From Octopus sinensis (lineage: Eukaryota): DNA of 16,718 nt. Position 1 is the first letter of the stretch. Each line of letters begins with the position of its first letter. Shown piece by piece: positions 6,891 to 9,800 of the stretch. Where the stretch lies: contig NW_021824928.1 of assembly GCF_006345805.1 (NCBI RefSeq), positions 1 through 16,718 of the forward strand, written 5' to 3'. Made by a program: the position numbers and the translations under genes. The notes below the pieces were generated by a model. The model had not been told where the DNA came from. It made no database searches and saw only the letters and a list, made by a program, of their open reading frames with translations.

Positions 6891-9800
6891 CTATGGTTTC
6901 TCTCCTGTATGAATGTTTTTATGAGAGGTTAAAGACTGAAAGCAAGACAATGATTTACCACAAATATCACACTCATACAGTTTCTCTCCAGTATGAATGG
7001 ATTTGTGATGAGTAAGGCTATGCTTCTGGGAGAATGATTTACCACAAATACGACATTGATATGGTTCCTCTCCTGTATGAATGTGTTTGTGAGAATCAAG
7101 GTAACGTCTTTGAGAGAATGACATTCCACAGACATCACTTTAATGAGGTTTTTCTCTCCTGTATGAATGTATTTGTGTCTAGTAAGGCCTATCTTCTGAG
7201 AGAATGATTTACCACAAATATCACAGTGATATGGTTTTTCACCTGTATGAATGAATTTGTGAGTAGTTAAATTACATTTTAATGAAAAAGATTTACCACA
7301 GATATCACAGGGATATGGTTTCTCTCCTGTATGAATGGATTTGTGATAAGTAAAGCCAGTCTTTTGAGAGAATGATTTACCACAAATACGACATTGATAT
7401 GGTTTCTCTCCTGTATGAATGTATTTGTGAGAATCAAGGTAACGTCTTTGAGAGAATGACATTCCACAGACATCACTTTAATGAGGTTTCTCTCCTGTAT
7501 GAATGTATTTGTGTTTAGTAAGGCCTATCTTCTGAGAGAATGATTTACCACAAATATCACAGTGATATGGTTTTTCACCTGTATGAATGAATTTGTGAGT
7601 AGTTAAATTACATTTTAATGAAAAAGATTTACCACAGATATCACAGGGATATGGTTTCTCTCCTGTATGAATGGATTTGTGATAAGTAAAGCCAGTCTTT
7701 TGAGAGAATGATTTACCCCAAATACGACATTGATATGGTTTCTCTCCTGTATGAATGTATTTGTGAGAATCAAGGTAACGTCTTTGAGAGAATGACATTC
7801 CACAGACATCACTTTAATGAGGTTTCTCTCCTGTATGAATGTATTTGTGTTTAGTAAGGCCTATCTTCTGAGAGAATGATTTACCACAAATATCACAGTG
7901 ATATGGTTTTTCACCTGTATGAATGAATTTGTGAGTAGTTAAATTACATTTTAATGAAAAAGATTTACCACAGATATCACAGGGATATGGTTTCTCTCCT
8001 GTATGAATGGATTTGTGATAAGTAAGGCCAGTCTTTTGAGAGAATGATTTACCACAAATACGACATTGATATGGTTTCTCTCCTGTATGAATGTATTTGT
8101 GAGAATCAAGGTAACGTCTTTGAGAGAATGACATTCCACAGACATCACTTTAATGAGGTTTCTCTCCTGTATGAATGTATTTGTGTTTAGTAAGGCCTAT
8201 CTTCTGAGAGAATGATTTACCACAAATATCACAGTGATATGGTTTTTCACCTGTATGAATGAATTTGTGAGTAGTTAAATTACATTTTAATGAAAAAGAT
8301 TTACCACAGATATCACAGGGATATGGTTTCTCTCCTGTATGAATGGATTTGTGATAAGTTAGGCCAGTCTTTTGAGAGAATTATTTACCACAAATACGAC
8401 ATTGATATGGTTTCTCTCCTGTATGAAAGTGTTTGTGAGAATCAAGGTTACATTTTTGAGAGAATGACATTCCACAGACATCACATTGATGAGGTTTCTC
8501 TCCTGTATGAATGTATTTGTGAGTAGTTAAATTACATTTTAATGAAAAAGATTTACCACAAATATCACACTGATATGGTTCCTCACCTGTATGAATGAAT
8601 TTGTGAGTAGTTAAATTACATTTTAATGGAAAAGATTTACCACAAATATCACATTGATATGGTTTCTCTCCTGTATGAATGGATTTGTGAGTGGTTAAAT
8701 TACATTTTACTGAAAAAGATTTACCACAGATATCACAGTGAAAAGGTTTCTCTCCTGTATGAATGTATTTGTGTTTAGTAAGGCCTATCTTCTGAGAGAA
8801 TGATTTACCACAAATATCACAGTGATATGGTTTTTCACCTGTATGAATGAATTTGTGAGTAGTTAAATTACATTTTAATGAAAAAGATTTACCACAGATA
8901 TCACAGGGATATGGTTTCTCTCCTGTATGAATGGATTTGTGATAAGTAAGCCAGTCTTTTGAGAGAATGATTTACCCCAAATACGACATTGATATGGTTT
9001 CTCTCCTGTATGAATGTATTTGTGAGAATCAAGGTAACGTCTTTGAGAGAATGACATTCCACAGACATCACTTTAATGAGGTTTCTCTCCTGTATGAATG
9101 TATTTGTTTTAGTAAGGCCTATCTTCTGAGAGAATGATTTACCACAAATATCACAGTGATATGGTTTTTCACCTGTATGAATGAATTTGTGAGTAGTTAA
9201 ATTACATTTTAATGAAAAAGATTTACCACAGATATCACAGGGATATGGTTTCTCTCCTGTATGAATGGATTTGTGATAAGTAAGGCCAGTCTTTTGAGAG
9301 AATGATTTACCACAAATACGACATTGATATGGTTTCTCTCCTGTATGAATGTATTTGTGAGAATCAAGGTAACGTCTTTGAGAGAATGACATTCCACAGA
9401 CATCACTTTAATGAGGTTTCTCTCCTGTATGAATGTATTTGTGTTTAGTAAGGCCTATCTTCTGAGAGAATGATTTACCACAAATATCACAGTGATATGG
9501 TTTTTCACCTGTATGAATGAATTTGTGAGTAGTTAAATTACATTTTAATGAAAAAGATTTACCACAGATATCACAGGGATATGGTTTCTCTCCTGTATGA
9601 ATGGATTTGTGATAAGTAAGGCCAGTCTTTTGAGAGAATGATTTACCACAAATACGACATTGATATGGTTTCTCTCCTGTATGAATGTATTTGTGAGAAT
9701 CAAGGTAACGTCTTTGAGAGAATGACATTCCACAGACATCACTTTAATGAGGTTTCTCTCCTGTATGAATGTATTTGTGTTTAGTAAGGCCTATCTTCTG

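Follow-up and report, generated by a model that had tools for sequence, protein, structure and literature searches.

A stop codon copied with its repeat unit in a zinc-finger array of Octopus sinensis, probably marking untranslated fingers behind a truncated reading frame

We describe a 16,718-nucleotide (nt) stretch of Octopus sinensis DNA (NCBI RefSeq assembly GCF_006345805.1, contig NW_021824928.1), called the window below, which is the whole of the unplaced scaffold C1399. Its minus strand carries a long tandem array of C2H2 zinc fingers in which one in-frame stop codon, TAA, recurs seven times along with the fingers around it, each time with an in-frame ATG 15 nt further on. The original prediction, made from the window alone, offered three models: a protein truncated by the stop with a dead tail that kept amplifying, termination and reinitiation along a polycistronic message, or readthrough or RNA editing of the stops. 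The comparisons described here were made across the whole assembly (2,719,151,902 bases in 13,516 contigs). It is probable, in our judgement, that an old stop ends the open reading frame (ORF) and that the untranslated fingers behind it have been amplified to different extents in different haplotypes and are decaying.

The array has the hallmarks of Krueppel-type C2H2 genes: tandem C-X2-C-X12-H-X3-H fingers, H/C linkers of the form TGEKP(Y/F) and an 84-nt period. Tandem Repeats Finder places a single array at 6863-10787, made up of 46.7 copies at a period of 84 bp or 11.7 at 336 bp, and the 46 TGEKP linkers in the window, spaced by 84 nt save at insertions and deletions (indels), anchor a parse into 47 fingers. 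Two further contigs, C8723 and C396 (the sister contigs), are collinear with the window in both flanks at 97-99.5% identity and have an array of ~21 fingers. Both contain an identical open ORF of 267 amino acids (aa) and nine fingers, running from ATG to TGEKPH-TAA without a lesion in its 267 codons. This ORF matches Pfam PF00096 (zf-C2H2) in nine stretches with E = 1.3e-47, and PF13465 with E = 9.8e-77. The ORF, in which the first finger follows after just 14 residues, has no match to the KRAB domain (PF01352); the search did not extend to upstream exons. When the 267-aa sequence is used in a word-based protein search, thousands of generic zinc-finger matches are returned, and the best named one is an Octopus protein with only 62% identity. 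We read the gene as the single-exon finger array of a Krueppel-type C2H2 gene in a segmentally duplicated cluster, with placed copies at 15.2-15.7 Mb of C27. Among paralogs, the first 123 codons give ratios of nonsynonymous to synonymous substitution rates (dN/dS) of 0.30-0.68, figures of little weight given that the fingers are not all orthologous; they suggest some constraint on the N-terminal fingers of the family.

A string search finds the exact 24-mer CAT TAA AGT GAT GTC TGT GGA ATG seven times on the minus strand of the window, with its TAA codons at plus-strand positions 9744-9746, 9408-9410, 9073-9075, 8150-8152, 7814-7816, 7478-7480 and 7140-7142. The stop-free counterpart CAT CAA TGT (H-Q-C) occurs twice, at 10080-10082 and 8486-8488; for both motifs the matches are those of the original prediction. 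In the list below, the repeat units that begin with the stop are labeled T and the two stop-free ones X. The array can then be written as six fingers (F1-F6), a block made up of F7-F9, X, T, T and T that is present twice, and three terminal fingers with a TAG stop. The features are given in the direction of the minus strand:

10879-10881, minus strand: ATG start of the zinc-finger ORF, common to all paralogs sampled
10848-10852, minus strand: run of five A, six in the sister contigs; a 1-nt deletion and frameshift 10 codons past the ATG
10083-10881, minus strand: pre-stop coding region, F1-F9; counterpart of the intact 267-aa ORF in C8723 and C396
10335-10337, minus strand: run of three T, four in the sister contigs and in the block 2 copy; second 1-nt deletion before the first TAA
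8759-10351, minus strand: block 1, 19 fingers (F7-F9, X and three TAA units)
7163-8758, minus strand: block 2, 19-finger duplicate of block 1
9747-10082, minus strand: X unit 1, four fingers with a stop-free first finger that is 1 nt off another paralog type
9411-9746, minus strand: T1, 336 bp, four fingers, starting with TAA AGT; the first in-frame stop of the array
9076-9410, minus strand: T2 (TAA at 9408-9410), one nucleotide deleted near 9107
8741-9075, minus strand: T3 (TAA at 9073-9075), one nucleotide deleted near 8949 and a Cys->Trp change at 8977; adjoins the second F7-F9
8153-8488, minus strand: X unit 2 (CAA TGT at 8483-8488), interrupted by its own TAA at 8381-8383 (Ser->stop) and also changed by Ile->Phe
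7817-8152, minus strand: T4 (TAA at 8150-8152), same sequence as T1
7481-7816, minus strand: T5 (TAA at 7814-7816), carrying Leu->Phe and a Cys->Trp change at 7718
7143-7480, minus strand: T6 (TAA at 7478-7480), two nucleotides inserted near 7150 and the substitutions Leu->Phe and Lys->Arg
6891-7142, minus strand: terminal unit, comprising a finger with TAA AGT (stop at 7140-7142), then the two last fingers of the ancestral array and its TAG stop at 6891-6893
6764-6769, minus strand: AATAAA, candidate poly(A) signal ~120 nt beyond the ancestral stop and the only one near the array on this strand

The terminal unit has the same tail architecture as the intact paralogs, and the Lys->Arg change of T6 is also found in the last full T unit of C8723.

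The stop-bearing units are 98-100% identical to one another, and thus the seven TAAs reflect copying rather than seven independent events. Across 339 nt, T1 and T4 are identical to each other and to the T unit that comes first in C8723 and in C396. The motif is also present on two contigs besides the window and so is not a read error, in line with the earlier argument that one error repeated identically seven times would be unlikely. Blocks 1 and 2, of 1593 and 1596 nt respectively, differ by six substitutions and three single-base indels. The parse points to an origin of the seven TAAs in few duplication events, one of which copied three TAAs at once. A single clean duplication of the 19-finger block is ruled out as the whole history: the same TGT->TGG change (Cys->Trp) is found at 8977 in T3 and at 7718 in T5, and these units do not correspond to each other between the blocks.

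Amplification to seven copies, as originally described, holds for the window contig; C8723 and C396 have only three TAAs each, from two T units (the second of them frameshifted) and a terminal unit. The X unit was not found in either sister contig. In the O. sinensis assembly 14% of the bases are unplaced, and duplicated BUSCOs, at 5.2%, are the highest among the octopus genomes compared (PMC10700109), so that retained haplotigs are to be expected. Over 5.8 kb of the right flank, three substituted sites separate C8723 from C396, against 38 substitutions and six indels between the window and either of them; in the left flank, the window is nearer to C396. C396 goes with the window at the far left and with C8723 on the right; it may be a haplotig that switches haplotype or else a very recent third copy of the locus. 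Its second T unit (L013 8040-8291, minus strand) has four changes within 24 nt that are not present in C8723 (F76S, two synonymous changes and Y84H), a cluster that looks like a short gene-conversion patch.

In the pre-stop region, the window differs from the sister contigs by one synonymous and one nonsynonymous substitution, along with the two 1-nt homopolymer deletions at 10848-10852 and 10335-10337. The deletions break the frame of the window copy twice before the first TAA and are seen only against the sister contigs. Because both lie in homopolymers on an unplaced scaffold, sequencing error is possible, and the window copy may or may not be a pseudogene. The figure of 13 fingers before the stop, on which the truncation model had been built, is therefore not retained: the window copy has two frameshifts upstream, and the ORF of the sister contigs has nine fingers.

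The age of the stop can be read from a genome-wide pattern search. TAA AGT has 12 copies, which lie only on the window contig, C8723 and C396. TAA TGT is found in the terminal unit of C396 and at three paralogs (C28:4974701, C11666:8391 and C27:15567978). CAA TGT with the same ...GTCTGTGGAATG occurs, besides the two sites in the window, at 23 others (C27 has 22 and C8723 one). HQCDVCGM is a standard finger of this zinc-finger family and is normally third-from-last in the array. Given the TAA-TGT intermediates in three paralogs and one sister unit, the TAA is older than the window locus. The sequence of changes that these copies indicate is CAA->TAA first, common to several paralogs, and TGT->AGT later, at the window locus only. 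It had been proposed that Gln->stop and Cys->Ser were linked and copied as a single event, and the intermediates contradict this. We also considered whether the TGT->AGT change could matter by creating ATTAAA, a poly(A) variant, over the stop, and rejected the idea: ATTAAA occurs 19 times on the minus strand of the array, three of these inside pre-stop coding fingers, and each S-L-K-C finger contains it.

Of the paralogs that carry TAA TGT, C11666 has a 295-aa ORF that stops exactly at the TAA, with a deletion in the tail behind it; C28 and C27:15567978 lose the frame one finger earlier than the TAA. A survey of 16 paralogs finds the canonical ancestral stop after NIHTGEKP in two and an alternative in-frame stop in two more, while the others are shortened by stops or frameshifts, most with finger-like sequence visible behind the stop. 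From this survey, truncation with ghost fingers is the norm in the C27 cluster. One locus there, L024 (C27:15512300-15515500), is a second case of a stop followed by fingers: the ORF that begins at locus position 1770 contains an independent in-frame TGA at the same finger position as the TAA, the residue before the first Cys, and intact fingers run on in frame past it. The window itself has a second C2H2 array of the same family at 1200-2300 on the plus strand, convergent with the main gene; this is a pseudogene that has lost its start codon (IRNSLEM rather than IMNPQEM) and a first Cys and has several frameshifts and stops.

The ATG that follows each TAA can be traced in the same way. The 15-nt spacer is simply the span from the residue preceding the first Cys to the residue after C-X2-C-G. 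Since the Met of CGM is family-wide, being present in the 23 stop-free copies, the ATG is inherited and not newly evolved. Every one of these in-frame ATGs has G at -3 and T at +4. The reading of the array as tandem mini-ORFs of about 106 codons is correct in its spacing and in the G at -3; only four of the nine possible mini-ORFs are exactly 106 aa long, and one of those four lacks a zinc-binding Cys. Pfam finds three fingers in the 106-aa mini-ORF.

Behind the stop, the private lesions reported earlier for the distal part of the array are all present: TAA at 8381-8383, TGG at 8977 and 7718, and three indels near 9107, 8949 and 7150. Outside two conversion patches, the post-stop point variants are I21F, C33W (at a zinc ligand), S36*, L43F, K101R and Y20H. 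The count of synonymous and nonsynonymous changes on either side of 9744, which had been suggested as a check, gives six nonsynonymous changes and one synonymous among the post-stop units, plus four 1-nt deletions and one 2-nt insertion; before the stop, the haplotypes differ by one of each. The tails of TAA-lineage paralogs (their three terminal fingers) have nonsynonymous-to-synonymous ratios (pN/pS) of 1.4-1.7, values that come from very few sites. The sister contigs look as a ghost array should, with an open frame upstream and a frameshift and repeated stops downstream.

The two X units were at first taken to be unmutated sisters of the T units. Compared with T, X differs at six sites in its first 58 nt and at one site, which is synonymous, in the other 278 nt. 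The six sites are CAA/TAA, TGT/AGT, three in the recognition helix (QKCN versus QRRY) and HKH/HKY, and the first finger of X is 1 nt from paralog fingers at C27:15463066 and C27:15603654 (L015+66 and L029-731). Such a patch does not fit a simple sister, and the best reading is that, in X, the finger of another paralog replaced or recombined with the first finger of the unit. In the window haplotype, the patch removed a TAA and restored the Cys. If both upstream homopolymer deletions were sequencing errors, the X patch would have lengthened the ORF from nine to 13 fingers at once. The post-stop ghost array might then serve as a reservoir of spare fingers retrievable into the protein. We hold this idea to be doubtful; if true, such a reservoir would be a concrete mechanism for fast change of DNA-binding specificity in the zinc-finger expansion of octopus.

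These results can be put together as follows. In one subfamily of the C27 cluster, the Gln codon CAA that immediately precedes the first Cys in the finger third from the end (HQCDVCGM...QRRYLDSHK) would have become TAA. The ORF would thereafter end at this TAA, and everything behind it would be untranslated ghost fingers, with a transcript predicted to reach the AATAAA at 6764-6769 and to have ~3 kb of such fingers as its 3' untranslated region. A later T->A change at the window locus would have turned TGT into AGT, and the resulting four-finger TAA-AGT unit of 336 bp may have multiplied by unequal recombination or replication slippage between the 84- and 336-bp repeats. The short haplotype (C8723 and C396) would have reached three stop-bearing units behind the intact nine-finger, 267-aa ORF; the window haplotype would have reached seven, mostly by duplication of the ~1595-bp, 19-finger block that carries three. 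In the two X units, the first finger was presumably replaced from, or recombined with, another paralog finger type. The tail, free of coding constraint, would gather nonsense, frameshift and zinc-ligand mutations, and the ATG 15 nt past each TAA, a family-wide Lys->Met residue, would be copied passively. The anatomy of the array, its different copy numbers on the contigs, the intermediates among paralogs and the range of lesions are seen directly in the sequence; how the units multiplied, where translation stops and how far the transcript extends are deduced from it. This scheme keeps two elements of the first of the original models, the truncating stop and the dead tail that amplifies; it departs from that model in the number of fingers ahead of the stop, in where the stop came from and in the status of the H-Q-C units.

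The extra length of the window array could be partly an artefact of assembly, together with the small indels, if long reads were mis-joined or under-polished on an unplaced haplotig; the real locus would then have about three stop units, with the TAA-AGT unit itself still real. The window is indeed a 16.7-kb unplaced scaffold of an assembly with the high unplaced and duplicated fractions given above, the long array is found on this contig only, its two blocks differ at just nine sites, and short homopolymer runs account for four of the five indels in the array (A5/A6, T3/T4, an A-run with two added and CC/TTT, the digits giving run lengths). We nevertheless regard an artefact as unlikely. The differences in the right flank are mostly substitutions (38 against six indels), as in real haplotype divergence and unlike long-read noise; the density of small indels in the array, ~1.2/kb, is close to the ~0.7/kb of the flank; and the six substitutions between the blocks include a nonsense change and two Cys->Trp changes, which polishing errors rarely make. 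Readthrough, or double adenosine-to-inosine (A-to-I) editing of UAA to UGG, would instead yield one long protein, with a spacer that binds no zinc in place of every fourth finger. Recoding is heavy in coleoids, and stop-loss editing of UAG to UGG is common enough for cephalopod editing pipelines to provide for it (PMC8382921). The convergent array is 77-82% complementary to the main array at 1272-1745 and could form double-stranded RNA with it if the two were co-transcribed. This segment is, however, the only complementary partner, at a distance of no less than 5.4 kb and past the AATAAA at 6764-6769. UAA requires two edits, and the 201 nt around the TAA fold no better than shuffled sequence (z = -0.09), so that the stable duplex expected at an ADAR-edited stop is not seen in the local fold.

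UAA followed by a purine at +4 is an efficient-termination context in eukaryotes, leaky contexts being, for example, UGA-CUAG and UAG-CARYYA. The stop here is UAA-A, which is not a context for programmed readthrough. Nor is there a long frame to read into, given the four frameshifting indels, the second nonsense codon and the two lost zinc cysteines downstream; in the sister contigs, the second T unit is frameshifted as well. We therefore consider readthrough or editing very unlikely. Termination followed by reinitiation, yielding a polycistronic series of 106-aa three-finger proteins, seems to us more improbable still. It would make use of the in-frame ATG 15 nt past each TAA, with its G at -3, and four 106-aa ORFs are intact. 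Against this, the Met is an inherited residue, found in 23 stop-free copies at paralogous loci, so that a stop-start junction specific to and conserved at this position was not found; five of the nine mini-ORFs are disrupted and one of the four intact ones is without a zinc cysteine; and the mini-proteins would start in the middle of a finger that lacks both of its cysteines. We know of no case, other than with dedicated viral-type elements, in which reinitiation past ORFs of hundreds of codons is more than negligible in eukaryotes. The doubts first raised about these two models, namely that the Met is also present in stop-free copies and that the distal array has lesions of its own, are confirmed on both points.

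Several points weigh against truncation followed by amplification and decay of an untranslated tail. That translation ends at the first TAA is something we infer from the DNA. The Cys->Trp change shared by T3 and T5 would need a further unequal exchange or conversion between non-corresponding units. Three distinct versions of the array are present in one assembly, which is more than two haplotypes allow. Several stop-free paralog pairs also have high tail pN/pS (>1), so that this ratio has little power to discriminate. Finally, the 267-aa ORF of the sister contigs has no exact match in the protein collection; the 295-aa ORF of C11666 and the 106-aa mini-ORF have none there either. With truncation and decay still the explanation that we favor, the array is a case of ordinary birth-and-death evolution of zinc-finger arrays and not a new coding trick.

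The window contains three other elements, apart from the zinc-finger arrays. At 13660-14850 on the plus strand is a 5'-truncated fragment of a reverse transcriptase from a non-LTR (long terminal repeat) retrotransposon (Pfam RVT_1, E = 2.2e-14, with an FADD motif); the fragment is split across three frames and lies in a GC-richer stretch (45-47% GC). An element of ~790 bp at 4634-5422 matches its own reverse complement at 80%, as a palindromic or foldback-type repeat, and has dozens of dispersed copies of 82-91% identity on many chromosomes. A dispersed repeat at 11518-12104 is ~82-84% identical to copies on many scaffolds, some of which (for example on C18) have an internal segment of ~125 nt that recurs at offsets of ~69 nt.

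The locus resembles known systems in part. Human ZNF252 has eleven post-stop fingers in its 3' untranslated region, and other zinc-finger arrays have likewise been truncated by in-frame stops (PMC2865497). As in such truncated poly-zinc-finger genes (ZNF252 and the KRAB-ZNFs), the octopus stop lies in the last coding exon, here the only one, and is followed first by in-frame fingers and then by degenerate ones. Unlike those genes, the octopus gene is from a cephalopod, has no KRAB domain and carries its stop in a finger that is itself part of the amplifying unit, so that the stop recurs three to seven times. The 84-bp period, the higher-order periods of 336 and ~1595 bp and the difference in copy number between haplotypes recall the minisatellite-like arrays of PRDM9 and KZNF genes, as do the short conversion patches that exchange recognition helices. 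PRDM9 differs in that its variable array is translated and positively selected; in octopus the variable part lies behind the stop, with no coding constraint seen. The clustering of the placed paralogs on one chromosome-scale scaffold is also in keeping with the lineage-specific C2H2 expansion of octopus, with its hundreds to thousands of clustered genes. Cephalopod C2H2 expansions have been documented in terms of gene counts and expression (PMC12513265); a search of the text of that paper finds no mention of pseudogenes or stop codons, and the expansion literature is without post-stop ghost arrays.

For the annotation of octopus genomes, gene models in the C27 cluster should end at the first TAA, and the unplaced haplotigs should be seen as holding variants of array length (~21 versus 47 fingers). 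In fast-evolving zinc-finger clusters, a truncated array that has recently duplicated in tandem shows just this pattern, a stop followed by perfect-looking fingers and an ATG, and the pattern is not evidence for recoding or polycistronic translation. The locus offers a natural example of a nonsense mutation common to several paralogs, of unstable copy number in the repeats behind it and of a conversion patch by which the stop is removed.

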